DNA of 64,000 nt from Phaeosaccion multiseriatum (GCA_965112735.1 OZ218965.1:1302001-1366000), one strand, 5' to 3'; positions 150-54,993 are shown, numbered from the stretch's first letter. The notes: generated from the letters alone by a model not told the origin. Program-made: numbers and translations.

Positions 150-170
150 ACTCTGTCTGCCCAAGCCTCC

Positions 171-205
<35 letters not shown>

Positions 206-240
206 TCTCTCTCTATCTGCCTCATGCCCTCGCCACTCAC

Positions 241-7079: not shown

Positions 7080-10000
7080 ATGACGGGCAACAACGTGGCG
7101 GCCTTTATTTCAGCTGTAGCATCAGGAGGTACTTACGCTTATGGCCGATACGGCGCTCCTGCTCCTGCTTTCACAAGCTCGTGGGGAAGATGGGCTTCTG
7201 CTGCTCCACCCGCTGCGCACCACCCTGCTATGGGGAAACAGAACTCCATCCTCACAGCCCCAGTGCATGCTGAGTGGCGATCGGCGACACGCTCGCTTCG
7301 CCTCCTTGGAACCAGGGGTAACATTAATACGGGAGGGTCGCGGCAGGGACCAGGTGGTAGAAGTAGTGAGCGGCAGAAGCAAATAGCGTTGACAAAGGAG
7401 ATCCAGAGACTTGGAAATATGCAGGACTGGAGAGGGGTGGCGAGAGTGATTGAGGAGGCGAAAGCAGCGGGGCTTCGGATGGATGTCATTCTGTACAACG
7501 CCGCCATTTCTGCAGTCGGTAAGGCTCGGCGATGGAAGGGGGCGCTTGCCCTACTCGAGGAGATGAAGGCGAGTGGTCTCCAACCTAATGTCATCTCGTA
7601 CAGCTCTGCGATTAGTGCTTGTGGCAAGGCAGGAGAGCACGAGAAGGCGCTGGCCTTGCTGGAGGAGATGCGGAGGGAAGGGCTTCGACCCGATGAAATC
7701 TCGTACAACTCTGCTATTACTGCTTGTGGCAATGCAGGAGAGCATGAGAAGGCGCTTGACTTGCTTGAGGAGATGCGGAGGGAAGGGGTTCGACCCGATG
7801 TCATCTCGTACAGCTCTGCGATTACGGCTTGTGGCAATGCAGGAGAGCACGAGAAGGCGCTGGCCTTGCTGGAGGAGATGAGGAGGGAAGGGCTTCGACC
7901 GAATGTCATCTCGTACAACTCTGCGATGACTGCTTGTGGCAAGGCAGGAGCGCACGAGAAGGCGCTTGACTTGCTGGAGGAGATGCGGAGGGAAGGGCTT
8001 CGACCCGAGGTCATCTCATACAACTCTGCGATTAGTGCTTGTGGCAATGCAGGAGAGCACGAGAAGGCGCTTGCCTTGCTGGAGGAGATGCGGAGGGAAA
8101 GGCTTCGACCCAATGAAATCTCGTACAGCTCTGCGATTAGTGCTTGTGGCAAGGCAGGAGAGCACGAGAAGGCGCTTGACTTGCTGGTGGAGATGCGGAG
8201 GGAAGGGCTTCGACCCGAGGTCATCTCGTACAACTCTGCGATTAGTGCTTGTGGCAATGCAGGAGAGCACGAGAAGGCGCTTGCCCTGCTGGAGGAGATG
8301 CGGAGGGAAGGGCTTCGACCCGATGAAATCACATACAACGCTGCGATAAGTGCTTGTGGCAATGCAGGAGAGCACGAGAAGGCGCTTGACTTGCTGGAGG
8401 AGATGCGGAGGGAAGGGCTTCGACCGAATGTCATCTCGTACAGCTCTGCGATTACTGCTTGTGGCAAGGCAGGAGCGCACGAGAAGGCGCTTGACTTGCT
8501 GGAGGAGATGCAGAGGGAAGGGCTTCGACCCGAGGTCATCTCGTACAACTCTGCGATTACTGCTTGTGGCAATGCAGGAGAGCACGAGAAGGCGCTGGCC
8601 TTGCTGGAGGAGATGCAGAGGGAAGGGCTTCGACCCGAGGTCATCTCGTACAACTCTGCGATTACTGCTTGTGGCAATGCAGGAGAGCACGATAAGGCGC
8701 TTGACTTGCTGGAGGAGATGCGGAGGGAAGGGCTTCGACCCGATGTCATCTCGTACAGCTCTGCGATTACGGCTTGTGGCAAGGCAGGGGAGCACGAGAA
8801 GGCGCTTAACTTGCTGGAGGAGATGCGGATGGAAGGGCTTCGACCCAATGAAATCTTATACAACTCTGGGATTACTGCTTGTGGCAATGCAGGAGAGCAT
8901 GAGAAGGCGCTTGCCCTACTCGAGGAGATGAAGGGGAGCGGTCTCCAACCCGATGTCATCTCGTACAGCTCTGCAATTACTGCTGTTGGCAATGCAGGAC
9001 AGCACGAGCAGGCGCTTGCCTTGCTGGAGGAGATGCGGAGGGAAGGGCTTCGACCCAATGAAATCTCGTACAGCTCTGCGATTTCTGCTTGTGGCAATGC
9101 AGGAGAGCACGAGAAGGCGCTTGCCTTGCTGGGGGAGATGCGGAGGGAAGGGCTTCAACCCAATGGGATCTCATACAACTCTGCGATTACTGCTGTTGGC
9201 AAGGCAGGAGAGCACGAGAAGGCGCTTGCCTTGCTGGAGGAGATGCGGAGGGAAGGGCTTCGACCGAATGTCATCTCGTACAGCTCTGCGATGACTGCTT
9301 GTGGCAAGGCAGGAGAGCACGATAAGGCGCTTGACTTGCTGGAGGAGATGCGGAGGGAAGGGATTCGACCGAATGTCATCTCGTACAGCTCTGCGATTAC
9401 TGCTTATGGCAATGCAGGAGAGCATGAGAAGGCGCTTGTCTTGCTGAAAGAGATGCGGAGGGAAGGGCTTCAACCCGATGAAATCTCGTACAACTCTGCC
9501 ATTACTGCTTGTGGCAATGCAGGAAAGCATGAGAAGGCGCTTGCCCTACTCGAGGAGATGAAGGCGAGCGGTCTCCAACCCGATGTCATCTCGTACAGCT
9601 CTGCAATTACTGCTGTTGGCAATGCAGGACAGCACGAGAAGGCGCTTGCCTTGCTGGAGGAGATGCGGAGGGAAGGGCTTCGACCCAATGTCGTCACGTA
9701 CAACTCTGCGATTTCTGCTTGTGGCAAGGCAGGAGAGCATGAGAAGGCGCTTGACTTGCTGGAGGAGATGCAGAGGGAAGGGCTTCCACCCGATGAAATC
9801 TCGTACAGCTCTGCGATTAGTGCTTGTGGCAATGCAGGAGAGCACGAGAAGGCGCTTGCCTTGCTGGAGGAGATGCGGAGGGAAGGGCTTCGACCCAATG
9901 AAATCTCGTACAGCTCTGCGATGACTGCTTGTGGCAAGGCAGGAGAGCACGAGAAGGCGCTTGCCTTGCTGGGGGAGATGCGGAGGGAAGGGCTTCGACC

Positions 10001-10472
10001 CGATGTTATCTCGTACAACTCTGCGATTAGTGCTTGTGGCAAGGCAGGAGAGCACGAGAAGGCGCTTGACTTGCTGGAGGAGATGCGGAGGGAAGAACTT
10101 CAGCCCGATGAGGTGACCTACCGCACCGCTATCGACGTCCTGTCCGCGCACGAGCAATGGAGCTCGGCTGATGGCTTGTATGCAGAGGCTGTCACAAAGG
10201 GTGTATTGTCGCATTGGAAGACGGGTAAGGAAGGGAAGGTCATGGATTTGCACGGGCACTCGGAGTGGACCGGCAAGGCCGCCCTTCGATACGCCCTTCA
10301 AGAGGAGAAGGCGAAGGGTCAGATCACTGTCATTACCGGTCGAGGCCGCGGCAGCGTGGACGGTGTCAGCGTGCTGAAGCCTGCGGTGTTGGCGTACCTC
10401 AAGGAAGAGCTCGGACTCCATGCCACGGTGCAGGACAGCAACGAGGGCCGTGTGAAGTTCGAAGTAGAGTAG
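7080..10472 (+). CDS. PPR-SMR protein copy 1 (1130 aa, intronless; 24 near-identical core PPR repeats plus caps, C-terminal SMR domain)
   Basis: 35-aa repeats of the type VISYNSAISACGKAGEHEKALALLEEMRREGLRPD at 7590-10109. The C-terminus has MDLHG...VITGRGRGS...LKPAV...NEGRV, typical of Smr domains. Confidence 0.95.
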   Translation: MTGNNVAAFISAVASGGTYAYGRYGAPAPAFTSSWGRWASAAPPAAHHPAMGKQNSILTAPVHAEWRSATRSLRLLGTRGNINTGGSRQGPGGRSSERQKQIALTKEIQRLGNMQDWRGVARVIEEAKAAGLRMDVILYNAAISAVGKARRWKGALALLEEMKASGLQPNVISYSSAISACGKAGEHEKALALLEEMRREGLRPDEISYNSAITACGNAGEHEKALDLLEEMRREGVRPDVISYSSAITACGNAGEHEKALALLEEMRREGLRPNVISYNSAMTACGKAGAHEKALDLLEEMRREGLRPEVISYNSAISACGNAGEHEKALALLEEMRRERLRPNEISYSSAISACGKAGEHEKALDLLVEMRREGLRPEVISYNSAISACGNAGEHEKALALLEEMRREGLRPDEITYNAAISACGNAGEHEKALDLLEEMRREGLRPNVISYSSAITACGKAGAHEKALDLLEEMQREGLRPEVISYNSAITACGNAGEHEKALALLEEMQREGLRPEVISYNSAITACGNAGEHDKALDLLEEMRREGLRPDVISYSSAITACGKAGEHEKALNLLEEMRMEGLRPNEILYNSGITACGNAGEHEKALALLEEMKGSGLQPDVISYSSAITAVGNAGQHEQALALLEEMRREGLRPNEISYSSAISACGNAGEHEKALALLGEMRREGLQPNGISYNSAITAVGKAGEHEKALALLEEMRREGLRPNVISYSSAMTACGKAGEHDKALDLLEEMRREGIRPNVISYSSAITAYGNAGEHEKALVLLKEMRREGLQPDEISYNSAITACGNAGKHEKALALLEEMKASGLQPDVISYSSAITAVGNAGQHEKALALLEEMRREGLRPNVVTYNSAISACGKAGEHEKALDLLEEMQREGLPPDEISYSSAISACGNAGEHEKALALLEEMRREGLRPNEISYSSAMTACGKAGEHEKALALLGEMRREGLRPDVISYNSAISACGKAGEHEKALDLLEEMRREELQPDEVTYRTAIDVLSAHEQWSSADGLYAEAVTKGVLSHWKTGKEGKVMDLHGHSEWTGKAALRYALQEEKAKGQITVITGRGRGSVDGVSVLKPAVLAYLKEELGLHATVQDSNEGRVKFEVE

Positions 10473-10924
10473 AGGAAACACTATTGACGACTGAATGAAA
10501 GGCGATCGCATCATGTATGGGCACACTCGCGGTAGGGCTCTCTCTCTTCCCGTCATCAGAGGGCGCACTAGCCTGGCACTTACTCCCTGCGATGGATATG
10601 CTTTCTCTCTCTCTCCAGAAGGAAGCATACCGCCGCACCCACTCTTTCTCTTCGCCTCCTTCCTTTCTGCTTGAGCCTGGCGTGACTCGCTTCTTGCTCT
10701 TTAGGTTTACTGTCTCATCACTTCACACAGCGCGTCGGTCGTGGTCCTTCTTGCAAGTCCAACACGGCACCTGTCAACAGCTGTGTTAGTGCGTGCTGGC
10801 GCTCCTCCTCGTCCATTCGCTCTCTTCATTCGGCACGTGTTCACTCACTCAGTCACGCACGCACCCACTCACCCACTCGATCACTCCCTCACATACTCTC
10901 ACTCTCTCACCCATTCACGTGCGC

Positions 10925-11383
10925 ACTCACTCTCTCACTCACTCACTCACTCACTCACTCACTCACTCACTCACTCACTCACTCACTCACTCACTCACTC
11001 ACTCACTCACTCACTCACTCACTCACTCACTCACTCACTCACTCACTCACTCACTCACTCACTCACTCACTCACTCACTCACTCACTCACTCACTCACTC
11101 ACTCACTCACTCACTCACTCACTCACTCACTCACTCACTCACTCACTCATTCATTCACTCCCTCACTCACTCGCTCACTCACTCACTCACTCACTCACTC
11201 ACTCACTCACTCACTCACTCACTCACTCACTCATTCATTCACTCCCTCACTCACTCGCTCACTCACTCACTCACTCACTCACTCACTCACTCACTCACTC
11301 ACTCATTCACTCACTCACTCACTCATTTATTCACTCCCTCACATTACTCACGCACTCACTCACTCACTCACACACACACTCAC
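10925..11383. repeat. (ACTC)n microsatellite
   Basis: Long, nearly perfect CACT run downstream of PPR copy 1. Confidence 0.95.
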
Positions 11384-12013
11384 TTTTGGGGGAGGTATGC
11401 GTGTGCGCGTGCGTGCATGAGGTAACCTACGCTCCGGCTACATACAAAGGATGCTGTCTTTCCGACCACCTCCTCAAATCAACGCGTCCTTCAAAGTGCA
11501 GCTCCTCCCCCCGGGGAAGGCTGAAGGTGTGTGTATGTGTATATGTAGGTATGTACGTATGTACGTATATGTGTATGCATCATGCCTCTCAAGGGCTCCA
11601 GCTTCTCGGGGCCCGTGGAAGCCATGCCTGGATCCTGACACATGGCTGTGCGCTGCGTCCCTTGTGTCCTGACACCTGGCCCCTCCCGCTGAACCGAAGC
11701 GCAATGGTCCACACGTCATCCTTCGCTCGTCCACGAAGAGAGCCTCTACAGAAGTTGTTGACGAGCTGCTCCAGCGCTGCTATCAGTCGCCCCACAACCC
11801 CTTTGTTAGTTTTGCGATACGAAGACCCGTCTGGACCTCTGCGGTGCGCTCCTCTGGACGAAGTGAGGGGATGAGTACATATTGACTCATAGGAATCAAT
11901 CTAAGAGCTACGTATGTGCGTGTGTGTGTATGTGTGTGTGCGTGTGCGTGTGCGTGTGTTGAGGGCCCCCTAGGGACGCCGGGGATACGAGGTCCACGGA
12001 ACCATATATATTA

Positions 12014-12165
12014 TCGACCCCTGATACACTATCCGCTATCCGCTATCGCCGGCGCCAGCCGGCGCGCTATCCGCTATCGGCCGGCGCCAGCCGCGCGCTA
12101 TCCGCTATCGGCCGCGGCCGATAGCGCGCTATCGAGAAAGTGGGCGATAGTGTGTCAGGGGTCGA
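12014..12165. mobile_element. 152-bp MITE-like element with 20-bp terminal inverted repeats
   Basis: Left end TCGACCCCTGATACACTATC and right end GATAGTGTGTCAGGGGTCGA (19/20 complementary), with internal GCTATC/GATAGC repeats. It is absent from the equivalent position upstream of copy 1. Confidence 0.7.
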
Positions 12166-12390
12166 GAATTTACTTCGTAACTCTTAAGTGCCATCTATGA
12201 TTGTCCACGGAACCTGTGAGGCCTGGAGCACCAACACACAACATTTGGGTCCTTCAATAAAGTTTGTCCCCCGTCCTATGAAAATTATCCTGTGCCAGGT
12301 TCGACAGCCACAGCTCATTCGTCGTGGGCTTCAGGTGGTGTCCGGAGGAAGGAAGATTGCTGTCGTGAATTGAGAGGCAGAGCGAAAAGG

Positions 12391-15243
12391 ATGACGGGCA
12401 ACAACGTGGCGGCCTTCATTTCCGCTGTAGCACCAGGAGGTACTTACGCTGATGGCCGAGCTACTGCTTTCACAAGCTCATGGGGAAGATGGGCTCCTGC
12501 TGCTCCATCCGCTGCGCACCGCCCTGCTGTGGGAAAACAGAACTCCGTCCTCACAGCCCCAGCAGTGCATGCTGAGAGAGAGAGATGCTCGCTTCGTCTC
12601 CTTGGAACCAGGAGTAACATTAATACGGGAGGGTCGCGGCAGGGACGAGGTGGTAGAAGTAATGAGCGGCAGAAGCGAATAGCGTTGACCAAGGAGATCC
12701 AGAGACTTGGAAAGATGCGGGACTGGAGAGGGGTGGCGAGAGTGATTGAGGAGGCGAAAGCAGCGGGGCTTCGGATGAACGTGATTTGCTTCAACGCCGC
12801 CATTTCTGCAGTGGGTAAGGCTGGGCGATGGAAGGGGGCGCTTGCCCTACTCGAGGAGATGAAGGCGAGCTGTCTCCAACCCAATGTCATCTCGTACAAC
12901 TCTGCAATTACTGCTGTTGGCAATGCAGGAGAGCACGAGAAGGCGCTTGACTTGCTGGAGGAGATGCGGAGGGAAGGGCTTCGACCCGATGTCATCTCGT
13001 ACAGCTCTGCGATGACTGCTGTTGGCAAGGCAGGAGAGCACGAGAAGGCGCTTGACTTGCTGGTGGAGATGCGGAGGGAAGGGCTTCGACCCAATGAAAT
13101 TTCGTACAACTCTGCGATTACTGCTTGTGGCAATGCAGGAGAGCATGAGAAGGCGCTTGCCCTACTCGAGGAGATGAAGGCGAGCGGTCTCCAACCCGAT
13201 GTCATCTCGTACAGCTCTGCGATTACTGCTTGTGGCAAGGCAGGACAGCACGAGAAGGCGCTTGACTTGCTGGAGGAGATGCGGAGGGAAGGGCTTCGAC
13301 CCGATGAAATCATATACAACTCTGCGATTAGTGCTTGTGGCAAGGCAGGAGAGCACGAGAAGGCGCTGGCCTTGCTGGAGGACATGCGGAGGGAAGGGCT
13401 TCACCCTAATGACATCTCATACAACTCTGCGATTTCTGCTGTTGGCAAGGCAGGAGAGCACGAGAAGGCGCTTGACTTGCTGGAGGAGATGCGGAGGGAA
13501 GGGCTTCGACCGAATGTCATCTCGTACAGCTCTGCGATTACTGCTTGTGGCAAGGCAGGAGAGCACGAGAAGGCGCTTGACTTGCTGGGGGAGATGCGGA
13601 GGGAAGGGATTCGACCGAATGTCATCTCGTACAGCTCTGCGATGACTGCTTCTGGCAATGCAGGAGAGCACGAGAAGGCGCTTGTCTTGCTGAAAGAGAT
13701 ACGGAGGGAAGGGCTTCCACCCGATGAAATCTCGTACAACTCTGCGATTACTGCTGTTGGCAATGCAGGAGAGCACGAGAAGGCGCTTGACTTGCTGGAG
13801 GAGATGCGGAGGGAAGGGCTTCGACCCGATGTCATCTCGTACAGCTCTTCGATTTCTGCTTGTGGCAATGCAGGAGAGCACGAGAAGGCGCTTGCCTTGC
13901 TGGGGGAGATGCGGAGGGAAGGGCTTCACCCTAATGACATCTCATACAACTCTGCGATTACTGCTGTTGGCAAGGCAGGAGAGCATGAGAAGGCGCTTGA
14001 CTTGCTGGAGGAGATGCGGAGGGAAGGGCTTCGACCGAATGTCATCTCGTACAACTCTGCGATTACTGCTTGTGGCAAGGCAGGAGAGCACGAGAAGGCG
14101 CTTGCCTTGCTGGGGGAGATGCGGAGGGAAGGGCTTCGACCCGAGGTCATCTCGTACAACTCTGCGATTAGTGCTTGTGGCAATGCAGGAGAGCACGAGA
14201 AGGCGCTTGACTTGCTGGAGGAGATGCGGAGGGAAGGGCTTCGACCCGATGTCATCTCGTACAACTCTGCGATTAGTGCTTGTGGCAAGGCAGGAGAGCA
14301 CGAGAAGGCGCTTGACTTGCTGGAGGAGATGCGGAGGGAAGGGCTTCGACCCGATGAAATCATATACAACTCTGCGATTAGTGCTTGTGGCAAGGCAGGA
14401 GAGCACGAGAAGGCGCTTGACTTGCTGGAGGAGATGCGGAGGGAAGGGCTTCGACCCGAGGTCATCTCGTACAACTCTGCGATTAGTGCTTGTGGCAATG
14501 CAGGAGAGCACGAGAAGGCGCTTGACTTGCTGGAGGAGATGCGGAGGGAAGGGCTTCGACCCGAGGTCATCTCGTACAACTCTGCGATTAGTGCTTGTGG
14601 CAATGCAGGAGAGCACGAGAAGGCGCTTGACTTGCTGGAGGAGATGCGGAGGGAAGGGCTTCGACCCGATGTCATCTCGTACAGCTCTGCGATTACGGCT
14701 TGTGGCAAGGCAGGGGAGCACGAGAAGGCTCTCGCCTTGCTGGGGGAGATGCGGAGGGAAGGGCTTCGACCCAATGAAATCATATACAACTCTGCGATTG
14801 GTGCTTGTGGCAAGGCAGGAGAGCACGAGAAGGCGCTGGCCTTGCTGGAGGACATGCGGAGGGAAGGGCTTGAACCCGATATCATCACGTACAGAACCGC
14901 TGTCGACGTCCTGTCCGTGCGCGAGCAATGGAGCTGGGCTGATGGCTTGTACGCAGAGGCTGTCACAAACGGTGTATTGTCGCATTGGAAGACGGGTAAG
15001 GAAGGGAAGGTCATGGATTTGCATGGGCACTCGGAGTGGACCGGCAAGGCCGCCCTTCGATACGCCCTCCAAGTGGAGAAGGCGAAGGGTCAGATCACTG
15101 TCATCACCGGTCGAGGCCGCGGCAGCGTGGACGGCATCAGCGTGCTCAAGCCTGCGGTGTTGGCGTACCTCAACGAAGAGCTCGGACTCCACGCCACGGG
15201 GCAGGACAGCAACGAGGGCCGTGTGAAGTTCGAAGTAGAGTAG
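12391..15243 (+). CDS. PPR-SMR protein copy 2 (950 aa, intronless; 19 core PPR repeats plus caps, SMR domain)
   Basis: The ATG at 12391 is homologous to 7080 (MTGNNVAAFISAVA). Core repeats span 12886-14880 and the SMR domain is almost identical to copy 1. Confidence 0.95.
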   Translation: MTGNNVAAFISAVAPGGTYADGRATAFTSSWGRWAPAAPSAAHRPAVGKQNSVLTAPAVHAERERCSLRLLGTRSNINTGGSRQGRGGRSNERQKRIALTKEIQRLGKMRDWRGVARVIEEAKAAGLRMNVICFNAAISAVGKAGRWKGALALLEEMKASCLQPNVISYNSAITAVGNAGEHEKALDLLEEMRREGLRPDVISYSSAMTAVGKAGEHEKALDLLVEMRREGLRPNEISYNSAITACGNAGEHEKALALLEEMKASGLQPDVISYSSAITACGKAGQHEKALDLLEEMRREGLRPDEIIYNSAISACGKAGEHEKALALLEDMRREGLHPNDISYNSAISAVGKAGEHEKALDLLEEMRREGLRPNVISYSSAITACGKAGEHEKALDLLGEMRREGIRPNVISYSSAMTASGNAGEHEKALVLLKEIRREGLPPDEISYNSAITAVGNAGEHEKALDLLEEMRREGLRPDVISYSSSISACGNAGEHEKALALLGEMRREGLHPNDISYNSAITAVGKAGEHEKALDLLEEMRREGLRPNVISYNSAITACGKAGEHEKALALLGEMRREGLRPEVISYNSAISACGNAGEHEKALDLLEEMRREGLRPDVISYNSAISACGKAGEHEKALDLLEEMRREGLRPDEIIYNSAISACGKAGEHEKALDLLEEMRREGLRPEVISYNSAISACGNAGEHEKALDLLEEMRREGLRPEVISYNSAISACGNAGEHEKALDLLEEMRREGLRPDVISYSSAITACGKAGEHEKALALLGEMRREGLRPNEIIYNSAIGACGKAGEHEKALALLEDMRREGLEPDIITYRTAVDVLSVREQWSWADGLYAEAVTNGVLSHWKTGKEGKVMDLHGHSEWTGKAALRYALQVEKAKGQITVITGRGRGSVDGISVLKPAVLAYLNEELGLHATGQDSNEGRVKFEVE

Positions 15244-15714
15244 AGGAAGCACTGTTGATGACTGAATGAAAGGCGATCGCATCATGTATGGGCACACTCG
15301 CGGTAGGGCTCTCTCTCTCTTCCCGTCATCAGACGGCGCACTAGCCTGGCACTTACTCCCTGCGATGGATATGCTCTCTCTCTCTCTCTCCAGAAGGAAG
15401 CATACCGCCGCACCCACTTTTCTCTTCGCCTCCTTCCTTTCTGCTTGAGCCTGGCGTGGCTTGTTTCTTGCTCTTTGGGTTTGCTGTCTCATCCCTTCAC
15501 ACAGCGCGTCGGTCGTGGTCCTTCTTGCAAGTCCAACACGGCACCTGTCAACAGCTGTGTTAGCGCGTGTTGGCGCTCCTCCTCGTCCATTCGCTCTCTT
15601 CATTCGGCACGTGTTCACTCACTCAGTCACGCACGCACCCACTCACCCACTCTCACTCCCTCACATACTCGCTCACTCTCTCACCCATTCACGTGCGCAC
15701 TCACTCAGTCACTC

Positions 15715-16262
15715 CCACTCACTCACTCACTCTCTCACTCACTCACTCACGCACTCACTCACTCACTCACTCACTCACTCACTCACTCACTCACTCACTC
15801 ACTCACTCACTCACTCATTCATTCACTCCCTCACTCACTCACTCACTCACTCACTCACTCATTCACTCACTCACTCACTCACTCACTCATTCTTTCACTC
15901 CCTCACTCACGCACTCACTCACTCACTCACTCACTCACTCACTCACTCACTCACTCACTCACTCACTCACTCACTCACTCACTCACTCACTCACTCACTC
16001 ACTCACTCACTCACTCACTCACTCACTCACTCACTCACTCACTCACTCACTCACTCACTCACTCACTCACTCACTCACTCACTCACTCACTCACTCACTC
16101 ACTCACTCACTCACTCACTCACTCACTCACTCACTCATTCATTCACTCCCTCACTCACTCACTCACTCACTCACTCACTCATTCACTCACTCACTCACTC
16201 ACTCACTCATTCTTTCACTCCCTCACTCACGCACTCACTCACTCACTCACACACACTCTCAC
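15715..16262. repeat. (ACTC)n microsatellite
   Basis: Paralogous to the tract at 10925-11383. Confidence 0.95.
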
Positions 16263-16477
16263 TTTTGGGGGAGGTACGCGTGTGCGCGTGCGTGCATGAG
16301 GTAACCTACAAAGGATGCCGTCTTTCCGACCACCTCCTCAAATCAACGCCTCCTTCAAAGTGCAGCTCCTCCCCCCCTGCCACATCTTCACTCGAGTCAG
16401 TGGCGGGGCCAAGTGGAGGCCGCCTTGCAGGGCTTCGTCAGGGTTGGGGACATGCCCCCCGGGAAAGGCTGAGGGTG

Positions 16478-16531
<54 letters not shown>

Positions 16532-16993
16532 TGTGTGTGTGTGTGTATATGTGTCCCTCAAGGGCTCTACTTAGGGCCCGTGGAAGCCACGCCTGGATCC
16601 TGACACATGGCTGTGCGCTGCGTCCTTTGTGTCCTGACACCTGGCTCCTCCCGCTGAACCGAATCGCCATGATCCACACGTCATCCTTCGTCCACGAAGA
16701 GAGCCTGCACAGAAGCTGGCGTCGAGCTGCTCCGGCGCTGCTGTCGGTCGCCCCATCACCCCTTTGTTAGTGTTGCGATGCGAAAGCAAAAGGGGAGAAC
16801 GTGAAAAAAAATTATGTCAATAAATTGACAGTTTCAGATTTTTCAATCATGCCTTCTCCCTCTGCGCTAAACTCTCCAAGCGACGGGAGTAGAGGAGTGG
16901 GAAGAGAACTGTGTAAAGAAGACAAGGGGAAAGAAGAAGGGCGAGGATGCAAGGCAATGAGGAGGCCCGTGAGCTACCCCCGCCCCCGTCTTG

Positions 16994-19397: not shown

Positions 19398-19429
<32 letters not shown>

Positions 19430-19711
19430 GGAAGGAGAAGCAGAAGGAGGGGCAGAAGGAGGGGCAGAAGGAGGGCCCGACGGAGAGGGAGAAGGAGAAG
19501 GAGGGAGAAAGCGGCAGCAAAGCCAAAGCCAATGACACTGCGGGCGCCTCGGCGTCGGCCACCCCCCTCGGGGCGAGGCAGAGGCAGAGACAAGAGGAAC
19601 TGCAAGCGAAGCAGGTACGTGTGCGTGCATCGGGCCCGTGGGTGTGGTGGGCGTGTAACCGTAACTATACACCGTGCCTACAAGTGGCGCGTGAGTGGAC
19701 CACGGCCAAAT

Positions 19712-19780
<69 letters not shown>

Positions 19781-22700
19781 ATATAATGGGAGAGCATCAT
19801 CCGTGCGGCCCCTGAGGGCAAGCAAAGGCAAGCCGCCCTGCCCTGCCCAGCCCGGCCCGGCCCCATGCAAGACAAACCCCTTTCAGAAGGACAAACACGG
19901 CACGGCCCTGCCCCCACAATGACGCGAGTGTCCCGCTCCTCCCCCCTCCTCCCCCCTGCCCTCGTCGTCCCTGACTCTGACTCCCTTCCCCTCCCCTTCC
20001 TTCCTCTCCCCTCCCCTTCCTTTTCCTCCACTCCCCTTCCTTCCCCTCCCCTCCCCTCCCCTCCCCTCCCCTCCCCTCCCCTCCCCTCCCCTGCCCTGCC
20101 CTGCCCCATACCCCATACCCCATACTCTATACCCTATGCCTCATACCCTATACCCCATACCCCATACCCTATACCCCATACCCCATACCCCATACCCCAT
20201 ACCCTGCCCACAGAGCCTACCCCCGGCGGTGCTGAACAGTCCTTCCCTCACGCAGGCACACGTGGAAAGTGCCCTCCGAGTGGCGCACAGGGCCGCCACC
20301 GCCCTTATACAGCGCAAGCACACCCGCACGCTGGGCAGGGCCTTTCACGACGGCCTCCTCGCGAAGGGTATGGGCCTTAGCACCTCCTCCACCGCGAAGG
20401 ATGGCAGTGGAAGGCCACTGGATGGCACTGGAGGGTCCAACCTACCGCTCTTCTTCCTCGCGTGTGAGACGGAGCTGCGCGAATCGCCCCGCATGGGCCG
20501 CGCCGAGCTCAAGAGGGGCATGGTCAAGGTGCTTGGAGAGGCTTCCTCAGCGGCTGGCGTGTGCAAGGGCTTTCAGCAGGCCGAACTCGACACTCTCCTG
20601 GCGGCGCTGCGGGGGCCAGGACTGAAGCAGGGGGAAGACATGACACTTGAGCACTTTGAGGTGGGACTCCGCCGACTCGTGGGCGGCGGAGGGATGGCAC
20701 TGGATGCGGGAGAGACCCAGACCCAGGGAGGGGAGACCCAGGGGGGAGAGACCCAGGGGGGAGAGACCCAGGGGGGAGAGACCCAGGGGGGAGAGACCCA
20801 GGGGGGAGAGACCCAGGGGGGAGAGACCCAGGGAGGGGAGGATAAGGCAGCGAGTCAGGGGCGAAGGGGGGGCAGTGTGACGAGTGATACGAATGAGTCG
20901 AGTGAGGCGCAGCGGAGGCGTCGGGCGATGAGCACCGCCATGGAGCTCTTCTCTGAGGAGGACAAGGCGATGGAGCTTGAGGAGCTAGCGATGAGCTGCA
21001 CGCCTCTGGCCGAAAAGCTTGAAGGCTATCTCAAGGGGCACACGCTGAGGCTCGTCGATCTCGTCGATGGCATGCTAGGTGAGGGAGGAAGGATGGGTGA
21101 GGGAGGAAGGACGGGTGAGGGAGGAAGGACGGGTGAGGGAGGAAGGATGTGTGGGGAGGAAGGAGGGAGCAGGCGGGGAGGGGAGGGAGGAATGCTCGCC
21201 AGTGCACCCGCTGGCGCTACTCTGCAGGCCCCCAGTGCCCAACTTCAACTTCGATTCCATCTCTGCCGCCTTCTCTCCCCACCCTCCTCTCTGCATGCCC
21301 TCCTTGTCGCCCTCCTTTGTCTAAGCTGAGCATACAAGCCCCTGCTGCGCGTTCTCCTCGCCAACTCCCTCCCTCTTTCACTCTCTTCCACCCTCTCTCA
21401 CCCTCTCTCACTCTCTCTCTCACTCACTCTCTCACCCTTTCTCACTCTCTCTCACTCTCTCTCACTCTCTCTCTCTCACACTCTCTCTCTCTCTCTCTCA
21501 CTCACTCTCTCACCCTCTCTCACTCTCCCTCACGCTCCCTCACGCTCCCTCACCCTCTCCCTCACGCTCTCCCTCACGCTCTCCCTCACGCTCTCCCTCA
21601 CGCTCTCCCTCACGCTCTCTTGCCCTTTCATTCTGCAGAGGTTGAGAGGGTAAAGGACGAAGGGCAGGCCCAGGGGGGGCAGGCATCACCCAAGGGGGAT
21701 AAGCAGCTCAGCAGCCGACCCACCTTAACCGTAGGTGCGTGCGTTTCACATCAGGAGGATATGCCAGTTTCCGTTTCGGTTAATTGGGACCTCGGTGTTA
21801 CCGAATAAGCAAGGCGGAGTGCTCGCGACGAGTGTGTCTTTGTGGGAAGGGGAGAGAGACGAAGCTTTACCTTTAGCTCTGGCCTGCCCTCTGTCCTCAT
21901 TCTTCCCCTCTCCCTCTCCCCCCCCCCTCTCTTCTCCCTCTCTTTGCGTCTCTTCTCTTCTCTTCTCTTCTCCTATACCCTCTGTGCACACACACACACA
22001 TGTTGGTGATACACACAGGCGCGAGAGATGTGATGCTCTCCCCAAAGTCCTTGGCGATCGTTCTTGCCGGCATTCAGGTGACATCACAAATGTCATATGG
22101 TTTAGGACAGGGGAGGGGAGGGAGGATCCATCCTCAGTTTTTCCTTCGGGCATGGGGGGGAGGGGCGAACGGCGGGGGGTGGACAAGGCTCCAATGCCCC
22201 CGACCTTGACCCTGACCCTGACCCTGACCCTGACCCTGACCCTGACCCTGACCCTGACCCTGACCCTGACCCTGACCCTGACCCTGACCCTGACCCTGAC
22301 CCTGACCCTGACCCTGACCCTGACCCTGACCCTGACCCTGACCCTGACCCTGACCCTGACCCTGACCCTGACCCTGACCCTGACCCTGACCCTGACCCTG
22401 ACCCTGACCCTGACCCTGACCCTGACCCTGACCCTGACCCTGACCCTGACCCTGACCCTGTCCCTGACCCTGACCCTGACCCTGACCCTGACCCTGACCC
22501 TGACCCTGACCCTGACCCTGACCCTGACCCTGACCCTGTCCCTGACCCTGTCCCTGACCCTGACCCTGGCCCTGACCCTGACCCTGACCCTGACCCTGAC
22601 CCTTACCCTGACCCTGACCCTGACCCTGACCCTGACCCTGACCCTGACCCTGTCCCTGACCCTGACCCTGACCCTGACCCTGACCCTGACCCTTACCCTG

Positions 22701-23719
22701 ACCCTGACCCTGACCCTTACCCTGACCCTGACCCCTCCCCTCCTCTCCCCTTATCTCAGGTGGGCGGTCTGTCTGCAGAGGAGCGCATCCGTCGCAAGAA
22801 GAAGAGGGAAGTGAAGGAGGCAAGGAGGAGGAAGAGCGCCGCAAGACTCAAGGTCTACGAGGTGTGTTGGGGCGGTGGATGGCAATGGATGGATGGTGGA
22901 TGTGGATGGCAGTGGATGGGTGCTGTCTCTTCTCTCTGGGAAGAGGCGGGCGATCGTGGGGAGGGAATGAGGGAGGCGATGGCACTAAATGGGTGATGCC
23001 GCTGCTTCTCTTCGTACATACGTAATGTACACACGCACGCACGCACATGGGTAGCGCCATTTGCTCTCGACTCGCAGGGGATGACACAGCGATGGCAGCA
23101 GATGGGGATAGGGTAGGATGGCAGCAGATGGGGATAGGGTAGGAACCCTCTCCCCTCTTCATGTCTGGCGCTAACGGCTGTCACCTACACGCGCCCCTGC
23201 CCATCCACTGCCATTTCCACCCCTCTCCATCCACTGCCATCCCGGCCCCTCGGCCTCTCCGTAGGCGCTGAGCTTGAAGCTGGAGGAAGCGACTCAGTCA
23301 GGCGCCCTTGACGTACTCGAGATGCTCATCAAGGAGATGGACAAGGCTGCCTTGAGGGTCGTGGACTTGTTCCGCAAGCTCGACAGCTCCGCCGACAACG
23401 CCATCAGCAAGGAGGAGCTCAAAGAGGGTCTCGCCTCGGTAAGTCAGTGCGAGGGCAGTGGATGGCAGTGAACGGCAGAGGGTGATGGCAGTGTATGTGT
23501 GGTGTGAGTGCATGTGTGTGCTCCTTCGCGTGTGTCCATCCCATTTGTACACAGAGCTGTGCGGTGCTGCTGCGTGGGGGGCGATGCGAAGGCCCAATTC
23601 TCATCGCTTGTCGACTCCGGACCCGGCTGCTGCTGCTGCTACTGCTGCTACTGCTGCTACTACTGCTGCTACTGCTAATACTACTACTACTGCTGCTGCC
23701 ACTACTGCTACTGCTGCTG

Positions 23720-23763
<44 letters not shown>

Positions 23764-26700: not shown

Positions 26701-26841
26701 CGTGTGTGTGTCTGTGTGTATGTGTGTGTGCGCATATGTGTGTGTGTATGTGTGGGGGGGGTGTGTGCGTGTGTGTGTGCGTGTGTGTATGTGTGCGTGT
26801 GTGTGTGCGTGTGTGTGTGTAAATGTGTGTGTGCGTGTGTG

Positions 26842-26872
<31 letters not shown>

Positions 26873-29015
26873 AAACGTGTGTGTGCGTGTGTGTGTGTGC
26901 GTGTGTACGCGTGTGTGTGTGCGTGCGTGTGTGTATGTGTGTGTGTGTGTGCGTGTGTGTGCGTGCGTGTGTGTGTGTGTGTGTAGGTCTGACCTTGACC
27001 GAGGCTCCACACTGCAGGAGCGACTGCCGGAGGAGGCCCGCCTTGCCCTCGAGATCAAGAAGAGGCTTCTCGCCAAGAAGAGGAGGGATGCAGGTGACAG
27101 AAGGCCGAGGCACCCTGAGAGAGAGGGGGGGGGGGGGGCAAGCCGGGCATATGCTTCAAGACTCGTTTGCTCGGCAACCTTACGTAACCTTACATAATAA
27201 CTGTACATAACCCTACACCGCATGCGTTCTGCTGCTTGCCTCTCTCATCCATTCATTGACCCGAACGGCACCGCACAACAGGAGAGCGTCACTGGGAGCA
27301 ATGGGTGGCGACCAAGAGTAAGGACCTCACCCTCAAGCGAAAGGAAGAGGAGGAGAGGAAGCGGAGGCAGGAGGAGGAGAAGAGGGAGAAGCTGCGCAGG
27401 ACCGAAGAGGGCAAAGAGGCCTTCGTGGCGTGGGTGGCCAAGAAGAAAAGGGTGAGTGAGGCTCATCCAACCCTCATCCTTCTCCTCCTCCTCCTCCTCC
27501 TCCTCCTTCTCTTCTTCCTCCTCCTCTCCCGTCCCCCCTTCTCCTCCTCCCTCCCCCTCCCCACTCCTCCCCCAAGAAGAAGAAGAACACACAGAGTCGG
27601 TGGGAGAGACGCACGACATGCTTTGTCTACTCTCTACTCTCTACTCTCCACTCTCCACTCTCTACTCGTATTCGAACATGTGAAGGGCCTCTATTGAAGG
27701 ATCTTGTCCCTGGGGCGGCCTGGCTGGAGGCCTCTAGACGCCCATGGAAGCATATGGAATCATATGGAAGCACATGGAAGCATATGGAAGCATATGGAAG
27801 TATATGGAAGCATATGGAAGCATATGGAAGCATATGGAAGCCTATGCTCCCTCCCTGCTGAGTGATGATTCCTTCCTACACTGCTCGTGCTCCTTGATCC
27901 CATCCTTCCTACCCCCTCCCCCCCCCCTCCTGCTCTTCTCCTCACATCTTGTCCCCTGCGCACTCACCCACCCCCCCACCCATCTACCCACCCCATCTGC
28001 CCACCCATCTGCCCACCCATCTGCCCACCCATCTGCCCACCCACCTACCCACCCATCTGCCCACCCATCTACCCACCCATCCACCCACCCATCTACCCAC
28101 CCATCTGCCTACTCAGGACGCGAAGGACGAGCGGCGGCGAGAGCGGGAGGCAGCAGCAGCGGAGGCGGCTCAGGTCGAAGCAGCTCAGCTCGCCACCGCC
28201 TCGAGGTGCAGCGTCAGCTCCAGTCATGCTGGTGATATGGGGGGCAACAGCGTCGACGGGGACGGCAGCGCTCCTTCTTCTCGCTTCCCAGTCATTTCGA
28301 GCGCCGAGGAGCGGCGGCGCGCGCAGCAGCAGGTCTCTCATGCGAAGAAGGCAAAGGTGGGGGTGCGGAGGGCAGGGACCAAGAGTAGCAAGCCACGAGC
28401 GATGAGGAAGGAAGAGCTCGAGTTCGCTCTTGCCAAAGTTGCGGTGAGCCCGTACCTGTGCTCGCCCGACAAGCCCTACAGCATGAGCGGGTTGAGGGCC
28501 TACAATAGACTCATGGCTAGCGCAGACGAGGAGGAGGGGGAGGGAGAGAAGGGGCCTCAGAGGGAGTCGATCTGGGCGAGAGTGGAGAGTGGGGGTGAGG
28601 AAGACGAGGAGGAAGGCGAGGAGGAAGGCGAAGAAAGCGAGGGTGAAGGGGAGGAGGGGAGCGGAGGGAGCGAAGCTGGACGTACGCCAGGCGGCAGGGA
28701 TGAACAAGAGGGGCAGAAGGCGAGTCAGCTGCGCCAACATCAGCAGCAGCCTTTGACGACACGGCAGCAACGGCGACTGCCCACGGGAAGGTCGAGAAAG
28801 AGTCCCTACGGAAGGACCGGAGGCCCGAGGGGGGCCGGGTCCGGAAAGGGTTCCGCCCCGTATCACGGGGGACGCGTGCTTCCCTCGGTACTTGTGGAGC
28901 AGGGAAGGATAGTCCGAGACCTGCTCGCCTCCGATGGAGGGGCCTTTGGCCACAGCGTGCAGAGCATTCGGGACAAGACCCGAGCGCAGACCACGCAAGG
29001 GAAGCGGAAACGGCG

Positions 29016-29053
<38 letters not shown>

Positions 29054-29613
29054 TGGTGATACAGCAGCTCTCGCTCCAGGCAGGCAGGGGGCTTGAGAAG
29101 GCGAAGAAGTCTGAGTCCGGCCTTGACGAGGGGCCGCAACCCGCAGGCGGGGCACGGCTGGAGCATGAAGAGGACGAGGACGAGGACGAGCAGCAAAGCT
29201 ACGCATCGGACGACGACTTTGTCTCAGCGCCTGCAGGGGCACACAGGGGGGCAGCCACGGACGGGGGGGCGAAGGGACAAGACCGAGACCAAGACAAGAA
29301 CGCAGATGGCGACGACAACGAAGATGACGATGACAACTCGCGGTACAGCGGAGACTTCGACGACGACGACGACCTCGGGGGCGGGGACGAGTTCAAAGTA
29401 CAGCAGGAGGAGGACATGCCCGCCTGGGGAGATGAGATGAAGGACCTGCCTCTCGATGACGCGTACAGCGAGGCAGCCTTCGAGGACGAAGAGGAGGAAG
29501 GCGAACAAGGAGGAGGGGGAGCGGGGAAGGAGCGGGGAGGGGACACCAACGGGACGTTAGCGCCGAGGTCGATCCACACGCCCCCACGCCCGGGGAAGGG
29601 CAAGGTGAGATGA
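16994..29613 (+). CDS. Large multi-exon EF-hand and coiled-coil protein; exon structure only partly resolved
   Basis: EF-hand loops [13 protein letters not shown] (~18350), [13 protein letters not shown] (~23380), [11 protein letters not shown] (~24855) and [13 protein letters not shown] (~25228) lie in exons bounded by GT-AG. A charged coiled coil ([11 protein letters not shown], ~27420) and an acidic final exon follow. It could be more than one gene, and the 3' end is uncertain. Confidence 0.65.
22207..22733. repeat. (CCCTGA)n telomere-variant-like hexamer array, intronic
   Basis: About 87 nearly perfect units; the reverse complement is (TCAGGG)n. Confidence 0.95.
23970..24650. repeat. (GAGT)n/(GAGG)n intronic microsatellite
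   Basis: Directly visible tetranucleotide runs. Confidence 0.9.
27743..27845. repeat. 10-bp (CATATGGAAG)n intronic tandem repeat, ~10 units
   Basis: Directly visible. Confidence 0.9.
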
Positions 29614-30288
29614 GAAGAGCGGGTCGAAACCGGCAAGCGATCGCTCGGCGGGGCAAGGGCTGCCAGTAGTCACGTCCACTCACTCACGCCAACAAACCTC
29701 TCCCTCCCTCCCTCTCTCGCTCCATCCTACGGCAGAAGCCACTTGGCTACTTGCAGCCCGAGCCCGCCAATCACTTACCCCCCCCCCTCCCTGCGCTCCC
29801 TCCTCCTTGTTTGCTGATCCTCGCTGATTCTCTCTCTTCTGTGCGACGTGGCTGTCTTTCTTTCTCTCTGTTCCTTCGCTTGTTGGGTGTACATCGTATG
29901 CGGCAACAGGAGGGACACCGCCCCACCACGGTGTCGGCGAGTCGAGCACAGTGACGACCTGGTCCAAGCCAAGCAGTTGGTGATATGGCAGGGTTGTGTA
30001 GAGCGATAGCACAAGCAAGCCGCAGCCACACTGCAACAGATAGTATCAAATCAAGTCAAGCGTCCCACTTTTGCTCCATCTAAAATAGGACTGGCACCCG
30101 TCCTACGTGCACTTTACTCCATCTCATATAGGGTGGTTCTCTTGAGAGAGAGGAGCCGGGCCTCCTGACACCAAGGGCACAGGCCTAAAGAAAAGACTTC
30201 ACTTCAAGTTGCGTAACCGTGTTGTGGTAGAAGCGTGGTTTACTTTACGCCCACGCACGCACGCGCGCACGCATACCTCGCCCAAAGT

Positions 30289-30432
30289 GAGAGTGTGTGT
30301 GACTGGTCGAGTGAGTGAAGAAGCGAGAGTGTGTGTGACTGGTCGAGTGAGTGAAGAAGCGAGAGTGTGTGTGACTGGTCGAGTGAGTGAAGAAGCGAGA
30401 GTGTGTGTGACTGGTCCAGTGAGTGAAGAAGC
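30289..30432. repeat. 36-bp tandem repeat x4 downstream of PPR copy 3
   Basis: Unit GAGAGTGTGTGTGACTGGTCGAGTGAGTGAAGAAGC. Confidence 0.9.
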
Positions 30433-30531
30433 GAATGCGTGCGTAACCGGTGGAGTCAGTGAATACATGAGTGAGTGAGGGAGAGGAAGAGTGGGTGGTG
30501 AGCCTTTCATTCGGTCATCACCAGTGTTTCC

Positions 30532-32211
30532 TCATATTACTTCGAACTTCACATGGCCCTCGTCGCTGTCCTGCCCCGTGGCGTGGAGTCCGAGCTCTTC
30601 GTTGAGGTACGCCAGCACCGCAGGCTTGAGCACGCTGACACCGTCCACGCTGCCGCGGCCTCGACCGGTGATGACGGTGATCCGGCCCTTCGCCTTCTCC
30701 ACTTGGAGGGCGTATCGAAGGGCGGCCTTGCCGGTCCACTCCGAGTGCCCGTGCAAATCCATGACCTTCCCTTCTTTACCCGTCTTCCAATGCGACAATA
30801 CACCGTTTGTGGCAGCCTCTGCATACAAGCCATCAGCCGAGCTCCACTGCTCGTGCAGGGACAGGACGTTGATAGCGGTGCTGTATGAGATTTCATCGGG
30901 TCGAAGCCCTTCCCTCCGCATCTCCTCGAGCAAGGCAAGCGCCTTCTCGTGCTCTCCTGCCTTGCCACAAGCCGTAATCGCAGAGTTGTATGTGACTTCA
31001 TCGGGTCGAAGCCCTTCCCTCCGCATCTCCTCGAGCAAGGCAAGCGCCTTCTCGTGCTCTCCTGCATTGCCACAAGCAGTAATCGCAGAGTTGTATGTGA
31101 CTTCATCGGGTCGAAGCCCTTCCCCCCGCATCTCCTCCAACAAGCCAAGCGCCTTCTCGTGCTCTCCTGCATTGCCACAGGCAGTGATCGCAGAGTTGTA
31201 TGAGATTTCATTGGGTCGAAGCCCTTCCCTCCGCATCTCCTCCAGCAAGTCAAGCGCCTTCTCGTGCTCTCCTGCGTTACCACAAGCAGTAATCGCAGAG
31301 CTGTACGAGATGACATCGGGTCGAAGCCCTTCCCTCCGCTTCTCCTCCAGCAAGGCAAGCGCCTTCTCGTGCTCTCCTGCCTTGCCACAAGCAGTGATCG
31401 CAGAGCTGTACGTAATGCCATCGGGTCGAAGCCCTTCGCTCCGCATCTCCTCCAGCAAATCAAGCGCCTTCTTGGGCTCTTCTGCATTGGCACACGCAGT
31501 AATCGCAGAGCTGTACGAGATGACATCGGGTCGAAGCCCTTCCCTCCGCATCTCCTTCAGCAAGTGAAGTGCCTTCTCGTGCTCTCCTGCATTGGCACAC
31601 GCAGTAATCGTAGAGCTGTACGAGATGACATCGGGTCGAAGCCCGTCCCTCCGCTTCTCCTCAAGCAAGTCAAGCGCCTTTTCGTGCTTTCCTGCCTTGC
31701 CAACAGCAGTAATTGCAGAGCTGTACGTGATATCATTGGGTCGAAGCCCTTCCCTCCGCATCTCCTCCAGCAAGTCAAGCGCCTTCTCGTGCTCTCCTGC
31801 ATTGCCACAAGCAGTAATCGCAGAGCTGTACGAGATGACATCGGGTCGAAGCCCTTCCCTCCGCATCTCCTCCAGCAAATCAAGCGCCTTCTCATGCTCT
31901 CCTGCATTGCCACAAGCAGCTATCGCAGAGCTGTACGAGATGACATTGGGTTGGAGACCGCTCGCCTTCATCTCCTCGAGTAGGGCAAGCGCACCCTTCC
32001 ATCGCCGAGCCTTACCCACTGCAGAAATGGCGGCGTTGAAGCAAATCACATTCATCCGAAGCCCCGCTGCTTTCGCCTCCTCAATCACTCTCGCCACCCC
32101 TCTCCAGTCCCGCATATTTCCAAGTCTCTGGATCTCCTTTGTCAACGCTATATGCTTCTGCCGCTCACTACTTCTGCCACCTGGTCCCTGCCGCGACCCT
32201 CCCGTATTCAT
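30532..32211 (-). CDS. PPR-SMR protein copy 3 (10 core repeats plus caps, SMR domain); leader frameshifted, predicted 559 aa from the internal ATG at 32211; may be a pseudogene
   Basis: The ancestral ATG at 32416 is out of frame after a net 26-nt deletion and stops at 32261. The PPR+SMR frame is intact, with core repeats at 31944-30895. Confidence 0.8.
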   Translation of the reverse strand: MNTGGSRQGPGGRSSERQKHIALTKEIQRLGNMRDWRGVARVIEEAKAAGLRMNVICFNAAISAVGKARRWKGALALLEEMKASGLQPNVISYSSAIAACGNAGEHEKALDLLEEMRREGLRPDVISYSSAITACGNAGEHEKALDLLEEMRREGLRPNDITYSSAITAVGKAGKHEKALDLLEEKRRDGLRPDVISYSSTITACANAGEHEKALHLLKEMRREGLRPDVISYSSAITACANAEEPKKALDLLEEMRSEGLRPDGITYSSAITACGKAGEHEKALALLEEKRREGLRPDVISYSSAITACGNAGEHEKALDLLEEMRREGLRPNEISYNSAITACGNAGEHEKALGLLEEMRGEGLRPDEVTYNSAITACGNAGEHEKALALLEEMRREGLRPDEVTYNSAITACGKAGEHEKALALLEEMRREGLRPDEISYSTAINVLSLHEQWSSADGLYAEAATNGVLSHWKTGKEGKVMDLHGHSEWTGKAALRYALQVEKAKGRITVITGRGRGSVDGVSVLKPAVLAYLNEELGLHATGQDSDEGHVKFEVI

Positions 32212-32749
32212 GTTACCCCTGGTTCCAAGGAGGCGAAGCGAGCGTGTCGCCGATCGCCGCTTAGTATGCACTGGGGCTGTGAGGATGGAGTTCTGTTTCC
32301 CCACAGCAGGGCGTTGCGCAGCGGGTGGAGCAGCAGAAGCCCATCTTCCCCACGAGCTTGTAAAAGCAGTAGCTCGGCATAGCGGAAATGAAGGCCGCCA
32401 CGTTGTTGCCCGTCATCCCTTTCGCTCGGCCTCGCTATTCACGATATCACTTCTTCCTTCCTTGGGACACCGCCTGAAGCCCACGACGAATGAGCTGTAG
32501 CTGTCGATCCTACGGGATGGAGAACGGGGGGAGGAACACCGGGGGGGCATTTCCTGGGGGGAGGAAATGTAGTGAGTTGGTGCTCCAAACCTCACAGGGA
32601 GTTTACATGCCCGACGTCCCTAGAGGGGCCCTCGACACACGCACACACACACACGCACACACCCTCAGCCCTCCCCGGGGGGCATGTGCCCAACCCTGAA
32701 GAGGCCCTGCAAGGCGGCCTTCACTTGGCGCTGCCACTGACTCGAGTGA

Positions 32750-45855: not shown

Positions 45856-54993
<9,138 letters not shown>

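Follow-up and report, generated by a model that had tools for sequence, protein, structure and literature searches.

P-class pentatricopeptide repeat (PPR) proteins, with or without an SMR domain, that carry the residues S-A-C-E-K at positions 9-13 of consecutive repeats are known as SACEK PPRs (PMC12787238). These proteins occur in dinoflagellates and heterokonts as well as in some haptophytes and cryptophytes; position 12 of the motif is the one most often substituted, and dinoflagellates contain 1-5 PPR-SMR proteins per species (PMC12787238). A cluster of three genes (copies 1, 2 and 3) encoding PPR-SMR proteins was identified in a 64-kb window of Phaeosaccion multiseriatum (GCA_965112735.1, OZ218965.1:1302001-1366000), the window being the whole stretch of 64,000 nucleotides that was analyzed. 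This window is eukaryotic nuclear DNA with 58% GC and is rich in microsatellites. The encoded proteins belong to a known kind, PPR-SMR with SACEK-like repeats, and the main interest of the cluster is that of a possible natural analogue of designer PPR nucleases and of a case of concerted evolution with modular re-assortment of the repeats.

Two conserved Smr motifs, LDXH and TGXG, are present in PPR-SMR proteins, and the corresponding motifs of human B3BP/N4BP2 are LDLH and TGRG (PMC6662315). Cleavage of RNA by SOT1 needs TGXG, and cleavage of DNA needs the second and fourth residues of LDXH (PMC6662315). Crystal structures of designer PPRs with RNA contain a salt bridge from Lys13 to the RNA phosphate and a Val2 that stacks on the base, and taking Lys13 out of all repeats abolishes binding (PMC4837458). 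The three genes of the window are read here, with moderate confidence, as members of a PPR-SMR family that is specific to the lineage, has been diversified by recombination and binds organellar RNA, for which SOT1-like cleavage next to the bound site would be the likeliest activity. This reading is based on PPR-SMR descent and architecture, the SACEK-like repeat type, a basic leader and the A/U-rich predicted targets.

Repeat arrays and Smr tails of the three genes

The genes and their core arrays have the following positions.

7080-10472, plus strand: copy 1 gene, an intact single-exon open reading frame (ORF) of 1130 aa (ORF list, translation, Pfam, repeat dissection)
12391-15243, plus strand: copy 2 gene, an intact ORF without introns (950 aa), starting at the homologue of the copy 1 ATG
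30532-32416, minus strand: copy 3 gene, 10 core repeats and an SMR tail, leader frameshifted
7590-10109, plus strand: copy 1 core array, 24 units of 105 bp (Tandem Repeats Finder, TRF; unit table)
12886-14880, plus strand: copy 2 core array, 19 units
30895-31944, minus strand: copy 3 core array, 10 units

All copies have the same order of parts, namely an N-terminal extension of ~100 aa, two cap repeats, the core array, one degenerate repeat and a tail of 85 aa. TRF detected a 105-bp array at 7588-10110 in copy 1 (24.0 copies, 88% matches), at 12879-14893 in copy 2 (19.2 copies, 89% matches) and at 30880-31951 on the minus strand in copy 3 (10.2 copies, 90% matches); these array lengths rest on the assembly, and short-read unitigs do not span the repeats. 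The 24, 19 and 10 near-identical core repeats that a reading made from the sequence alone (the sequence-only reading) had described for three paralogues were thus reproduced by TRF and by dissection into 35-aa units. The Pfam family PPR_2 (PF13041) was detected in copies 1, 2 and 3 with E=6e-255, 1e-204 and 1e-121 and with 25, 20 and 11 PPR stretches, respectively, and the period is strictly 35 aa, by which all three are classified as P-class (35-aa) PPR proteins. The nearest-neighbour distance of the core repeats is 0-10 of 105 nt. Mean pairwise amino acid identity among them is 81-82%, whereas it is 42-63% within the best database relatives. Repeat similarity and Pfam therefore agree with the description of the products as P-class PPR-SMR proteins homogenised in the manner of transcription activator-like effectors (TALEs).

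Ile occupies position 2 in 50 of the 53 core repeats, and Tyr occupies position 4 in all of them. Residue 5 is N or S and residue 35 is D, N or E, and each allele at these positions has a single codon (AAC/AGC at position 5; GAT/AAT/GAG at position 35). Residue 13 is Lys in 24 repeats and Asn in 29. The pairs of residues 5 and 35 are as follows.

Copy 1: NN SD ND SN NE NN SE ND NN SE NE ND SN ND SN SN NN SN SD ND SN ND SN SD ND
Copy 2: NN ND SN ND SD NN NN SN SD ND SN NN NE ND ND NE NE ND SN ND
Copy 3: NN SD SN SD SD SD SD SN ND ND ND

These pairs are identical to the earlier ones for 56/56 of the repeats listed, and the unit table bears out that the code residues vary both among repeats and among paralogues. 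In the established PPR code, ND specifies U, SN specifies A, SD specifies G and NN specifies C or U. The arrays contain no cytosine-specific NS unit. Two long antisense ORFs run through the arrays (7139-9097, minus strand, 652 aa; 13942-15618, minus strand, 558 aa) as those frames of the 105-bp unit are free of stop codons.

The tails contain the following Smr cores.

10245-10409, plus strand: copy 1 Smr core, aa 1056-1110, with MDLH and TGRG (Pfam PF01713)
15016-15180, plus strand: copy 2 Smr core, aa 876-930 (Pfam Smr 21-23 bits)
30595-30759, minus strand: copy 3 Smr core (Pfam Smr 22.8 bits), motifs as in copies 1 and 2

Profile hidden Markov models confirmed PPR in all three copies and Smr (PF01713) in copy 1, the tail of which scores 27.1 bits by itself, above the cut-off of 25.7; the scores of the other two tails are weighed below, and their Smr cores are ~90% identical to that of copy 1. 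By sequence, the copy 1 tail matches the Smr domain of N4BP2 in the PDB (E=7e-4). MDLH (LDXH-type) and TGRG (TGXG-type) are intact in all three copies, and the claim that the tail retains nuclease-relevant motifs holds in 3/3. An AlphaFold2 (AF2) model of the last 155 aa, made from a shallow six-row alignment, has a mean predicted local distance difference test (pLDDT) score of 81 and consists of two PPR hairpins followed by a beta-alpha-beta-alpha-beta domain. Over the whole model, the best PDB matches by Foldseek are to chain G, a subunit with PPRs, of the plastid-encoded RNA polymerase (8ras_G, 9epc_G and 8r6s_G); this chain is presumably the PPR-SMR protein PAP2/pTAC2. The human Smr domain (3fau, 2d9i and 2vkc) comes next, with a target-normalised template modelling (TM) score of up to 0.70. 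The Smr assignment and the integrity of the motifs are supported by these comparisons, and nuclease activity is a prediction.

Relatives, leader and predicted organellar targets

The full-length search returned distant proteins only; their identity is 25-53% and falls mostly on the repeats, and their sources are brown algae, dinoflagellates, Noctiluca and marine assemblies. Two of the database proteins, P0012 and P0006, combine PPR with a C-terminal Smr and have the same 'LY.EA....HW' linker as found here. An exhaustive HMMER search of the 120-aa tail against 1.84 billion representatives gave 105 matches with E<=0.001, four of them with E<=1e-10, and none of the 105 exceeds 44% identity over the tail. 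A word-based search with the tail alone gave no match, and no relative was found in viral contigs or in JGI metagenome contigs. The repeat units have (T/S)-A-C-G-(N/K) at positions 9-13 and Trp17 in the cap repeat only, and they look like a derived SACEK-type form.

In copy 1, the part of the protein that precedes the repeats has the following position.

7080-7379, plus strand: copy 1 N-terminal extension, 100 aa (translation, composition)

This leader contains 11 Arg/Lys and two Glu (two acidic residues in all), is rich in Ser, Ala, Gly and Thr, and is a candidate organelle-import sequence. Application of the code to the arrays predicts the following targets, in which n stands for Glu35 units.

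Copy 1: YGUAnYnUYnnUAUAAYAGUAUAGU
Copy 2: YUAUGYYAGUAYnUUnnUAU
Copy 3: YGAGGGGAUUU, which is G-rich

The A/U-rich targets predicted for copies 1 and 2 would fit A/T-rich organelle transcripts better than a nucleus of 58% GC. Within the 64-kb window, the predicted strings of copies 1, 2 and 3 have 0, 0 and 1 matches, respectively, none above chance. To our knowledge, all characterised PPR-SMR proteins act on organellar RNA or transcription.

In the proposed mechanism, the Arg/Ser-rich N-terminal extension would take the protein into the organelle, where the PPR solenoid would bind single-stranded RNA with one nucleotide per repeat. Residues 5 (Asn/Ser) and 35 (Asp/Asn/Glu) would determine the choice of base. 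By analogy with the designer-PPR structures, Ile2 would stack on the base, and the phosphate would be contacted by Lys13 in those repeats, about half, that have it. The Smr domain would sit just 3' of the bound site and would either cut there, as plant SOT1 does, or have the non-catalytic partner role that it has in other plant PPR-SMR proteins. Unequal crossing-over and gene conversion would keep the 105-bp units alike and at the same time re-assort them.

Several observations weigh against this reading. The Smr scores of two tails, 23.4 bits in copy 2 and 22.8 bits in copy 3, are just below the cut-off. Glu35, present in seven repeats, is non-canonical and has no assigned base, and Lys13 is missing from roughly every second repeat. 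No clean signal-peptide, ASAFAP or bipartite pattern is present in the leader. As the units are free of stop codons, ORF length inside the arrays is weak evidence of coding or selection. Mean pairwise synonymous and non-synonymous diversity of the repeats are 0.135 and 0.098, respectively, a ratio (pN/pS) of 0.73, and such selection statistics for repeats are confounded by concerted evolution. The sequencing runs found to contain the locus, all of one sample, have a flat depth of ~108 over 31945-33950, with intergenic DNA covered as evenly as the gene, and are therefore genomic DNA rather than RNA.

Duplication, exchange among units and competing explanations

The genes are accompanied by flanks that are common to two or three of the copies.

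6900-7079 (plus), 12210-12390 (plus) and 32417-32600 (minus): conserved 5' flank of ~180-190 bp (alignment, sliding identity)
10473-11384, plus strand: 3' flank of the copy-1/copy-2 duplication unit; the counterpart after copy 2 is 15244-16263

Alignment of the 3' flanks of copies 1 and 2 gave 84-97% identity over ~2 kb. By this alignment, the two copies are a tandem duplication of ~5.3 kb that takes in a (TCAC)n microsatellite as well as ~2 kb of 3' flank. The (TCAC)n microsatellites are at 10841-11384 (135 units) and 15615-16263 (163 units), in each case ~370 bp past the stop codon of the gene (copy 1 or copy 2); the duplication of the genes included them, and their lengths have diverged since. 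Copy 3 is inverted and lies ~15 kb from this pair. Its homology to the other copies stops right past the stop codon on the 3' side, and the 5' flank is common over at least ~190 bp. The conserved 5' flank is probably the promoter or 5' untranslated region of the duplicated unit, and the extent of homology identifies the paralogues as products of segmental duplication. The earlier comparison with restorer-of-fertility-like (RFL) genes is apt for this genome organisation, the three paralogues being clustered in the window. The cap-repeat region of copy 3 was covered at ~4-26x the flat flank depth, at a likeness of at least 97%, in two DNA runs; this excess of depth agrees with a many-copy family.

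All three copies had been described as intronless paralogues with nearly identical N-caps. Copies 1 and 2 are intact. Copy 3 has a 26-bp deletion relative to copy 2 after leader codon 12, located by DNA alignment between 32379 and 32378, which places the ancestral ATG (32416-32414) out of frame. Three-frame translation gave a long ORF in copy 3 at 32304-30532 (590 aa), which starts at GTG 32304. An in-frame ATG at 32211-32209 was created by a substitution, copies 1 and 2 having ATT there, and a product started at this ATG would be without most of the leader. The N-caps are similar, but small indels separate that of copy 2 from those of copies 1 and 3.

The six dimorphic sites inside the unit are near linkage equilibrium (r2 <=0.11), and some haplotypes span the junction between units. 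Glu35 is followed by Val1, Asn5 and Asn13 in the next unit in 7/7 cases, whereas other residues at position 35 are followed by this combination in 0/43 (p=1e-8); one more unit with Val1, Asn5 and Asn13 comes after the cap repeat. Blocks of units also recur. Units 13, 14, 16 and 17 of copy 2 differ from one another by 0-2 nt, units 13-14 of copy 1 (c1_13-14) recur as c1_19-20, and c1_16-18 matches c2_6-8 at 3-5 nt per unit with the code unchanged. The second half of the cap type, 'K(A/G)SGLQP', is present in the internal units c1_13, c1_19 and c2_3. The low linkage inside units, the junction-spanning haplotypes and the blocks common within and between genes point to arrays that are mosaics from unequal crossing-over and short-tract gene conversion, with breakpoints inside units. 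The same evidence points to exchange within single genes as well as between adjacent ones. The different array lengths and codes of the paralogues would follow from unequal crossing-over and gene conversion of 105-bp units.

The sequence-only reading had called the repertoire rapidly reprogrammed, and this was not borne out. Synonymous divergence is 0.12-0.14 in the C-terminal regions of the paralogues and 0.135 among the repeats, and the three-repeat block kept its code. By these values, divergence among the paralogues is about the same as among the repeats, and the copies are not very young.

The eight most variable positions of the 53 core repeats are listed below.

Position 22: entropy 1.53, D/A
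Position 35: entropy 1.41, D/N/E (rank 2 of 35)
Position 1: entropy 1.37, V/E
Position 9: entropy 1.15, T/S
Position 33: entropy 1.09, R/Q
Position 25: entropy 1.03, E/G
Position 5: entropy 1.00, N/S (rank 7 of 35)
Position 13: entropy 0.99, N/K

Tyr4, Ala10, Ala14, Ala20, Leu21, Leu23, Leu24 and Pro34 are invariant in the 53 repeats. The expected excess of variation at positions 5 and 35 was recovered by rank, but positions 22, 1, 9, 33, 25 and 13 vary in the same range. Three of the four RNA-contact positions (35, 5 and 13) are among the eight (hypergeometric p ~0.03, by hand), a modest signal with a threshold set post hoc. The pN/pS ratio is 1.65 for the six dimorphic codons (1, 5, 9, 13, 22 and 35) and 0.48 for the other 29. 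The value above 1 was rejected as proof of positive selection, the codons having been chosen for their variability.

An arms race like that of RFL genes is the competing explanation that fares best, although it is unlikely. According to this explanation, the family tracks fast-changing or selfish organellar transcripts, diversifying selection favours new arrays, and target RNA is destroyed through the SMR tail. It would explain the clustering of paralogues with unlike array lengths and codes and the presence of positions 35, 5 and 13 among the most variable. It also agrees with the closest repeat pairs (<=3 nt apart), in which 42/63 differences fall at codons 35, 9, 13, 5, 22 and 1. Unequal crossing-over and diversifying selection at code residues are features of plant RFL clusters (PMC5075784, PMC7380019). 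However, equal dimorphism is seen at positions 1, 9 and 22, none of them a known RNA contact, and the ratio of 1.65 comes from codons picked as variable. That the high-frequency variants are all non-synonymous is by itself not significant (~0.75^6), and in the block shared by c1_16-18 and c2_6-8 the code was held while other residues changed.

A bolder proposal, somewhat less probable again, is a natural system of 'designer-PPR nucleases', with tens of genes assembled from interchangeable 105-bp modules that are recombined for new specificities, each gene having an active SMR endonuclease. The modules would differ in base choice (positions 5 and 35) and in phosphate grip (position 13). Such a system would be the RNA-level counterpart of TALE arrays and would serve against foreign RNA or in a conflict between nucleus and organelle. 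For single-stranded RNA, PPR proteins are the main programmable scaffold, and engineering uses artificial consensus repeats, the natural ones being degenerate. The family would allow a direct test of the 5/35 code and of the role of Lys13 in a native homogeneous scaffold, and it would yield candidate SMR domains for RNA-cutting tools, a need named in PMC6662315. It would also be a second, independent case, after the plant RFL genes, of recombination-driven turnover of RNA specificity. Even if the proteins were ordinary organellar processing factors, the arrays would be a clear example of concerted evolution inside a helical-repeat protein.

It is quite improbable that the family is mostly a neutral by-product of slippage and unequal exchange, with some copies decaying and the differences among units left over from ancestral unit types. 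The frameshifted leader of copy 3, the overall pN/pS of 0.73 and the single codon per allele at positions 5 and 35, as if a few ancestral types had been shuffled, are in favour of this explanation. Nevertheless, the open frames of copies 1 and 2 extend over 1130 and 950 codons and include the non-repetitive ends, and the structurally important positions are invariant in all 53 repeats. Over the last 120 codons, pS between paralogues is 0.115-0.143 and pN/pS is ~0.45 in all three pairs, by which the C-terminal tail is under purifying selection. Rare variants of both kinds are more numerous in the array of copy 3 than in the other two arrays, but their non-synonymous to synonymous ratio there is 1.06, not above the 1.33-1.75 of copies 1 and 2. 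The candidate reading of copy 3 as a decaying pseudogene was rejected as unproven on this ratio.

A cytosolic repertoire of programmable RNases against virus or transposon RNAs is very unlikely, for although the family is multi-copy, the proteins are modular (a binding array with a nuclease-type domain whose motifs are intact), copy 3 might stay cytosolic if started at ATG 32211 and its predicted target is G-rich rather than A/U-rich, copies 1 and 2 retain the long basic leader, the viral contigs searched contain no relatives, target matches in the window are not above chance, no recognised defence gene is present in the neighbourhood, and we know of no PPR-SMR protein that acts in antiviral defence. 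The role against viral, selfish or transposable-element RNAs put forward in the sequence-only reading found no backing, in the viral contigs or elsewhere in the analysis, and it sits poorly with an organelle-import-like leader and A/U-rich targets of copies 1 and 2.

Neighbouring features and comparison with described systems

The window contains the following other features.

151-1518, minus strand: ORF that matches part of a bacterial-type ribosomal protein L4 domain (PF00573, E=6e-18, only profile positions 72-117), probably a single exon of a nuclear gene whose product is an organellar ribosomal protein
22198-22734: (CCCTGA)n array, ~90 units, 96% identity, a regular hexamer
32840-33110: palindromic element resembling a miniature inverted-repeat transposable element (MITE), with inverted arms at ~32876-32933 and ~33020-33080
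42520-44748, plus strand: intronless 742-aa ORF based on a 114-bp tandem repeat (43102-44612) and matching FNIP repeats (PF05725, E=4e-71)
50307-51827: (CAGA)n microsatellite of 1.5 kb, 94% matches, with spurious minus-strand ORFs of >500 aa

The MITE-like element lies ~450 bp upstream of copy 3. It was covered at 20-300x single-copy depth in 4/4 runs, one of them from a second sample, and is therefore a high-copy dispersed repeat. No structured RNA was found in the window by Rfam.

Among the described systems, the SACEK PPRs and PPR-SMRs resemble the present proteins in their runs of consensus-like repeats, in which positions 9-13 read (S/T)-A-C-x-K. The Smr linker is the same in P0012 and P0006, and the best full-length matches are from brown algae and dinoflagellates. 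The present units differ in having Gly12 and Asn/Lys13 instead of Glu-Lys, and His17 (outside the cap) instead of the usual Trp17. The family also differs from the 1-5 PPR-SMRs per species of dinoflagellates; the repeats of the matches are more degenerate (42-63% against 81-82% identity), and the Smr motifs of the relatives are less canonical (DFH/DFR, VGRG).

The plant PPR-SMR proteins (SOT1, GUN1, pTAC2/PAP2, SVR7 and PPR53/ATP4) likewise combine a P-class array with a C-terminal Smr. Both types of motif are present here, and TGRG is the same as in human N4BP2/B3BP (PMC6662315). The plant genes are few per genome, single-copy and conserved and have degenerate repeats, whereas the genes described here are clustered and multi-copy, with arrays of 10-24 units and repeats that are ~81% identical. 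The RFL PPR clusters of flowering plants resemble this locus in their clustered P-class paralogues, unequal crossing-over and variable code residues (PMC5075784, PMC7380019). They differ in having no nuclease domain and repeats that are not homogenised at the DNA level, and mitochondrial targeting and conflict with cytoplasmic male sterility (CMS) genes are documented for RFL alone.

Designer PPRs (dPPR, cPPR) and engineered PPR-SMR nucleases are also built from near-identical 35-aa units that differ mainly at the code positions. The unit found here is 40-41% identical to cPPR by Foldseek, and the pairs ND, SN, SD and NN are used in designs. Unlike the designed proteins, the present genes are natural, have additional dimorphism at positions 1, 9, 13 and 22, lack the NS unit and contain Glu35 units. 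TAL effectors and TALENs share homogenised repeats of ~34-35 aa, two specificity residues and reshuffling by recombination, but they have an unrelated fold, their ligand is double-stranded DNA and their variation is almost solely at the two specificity residues. The analogy with TALEs is therefore one of design and not of descent.

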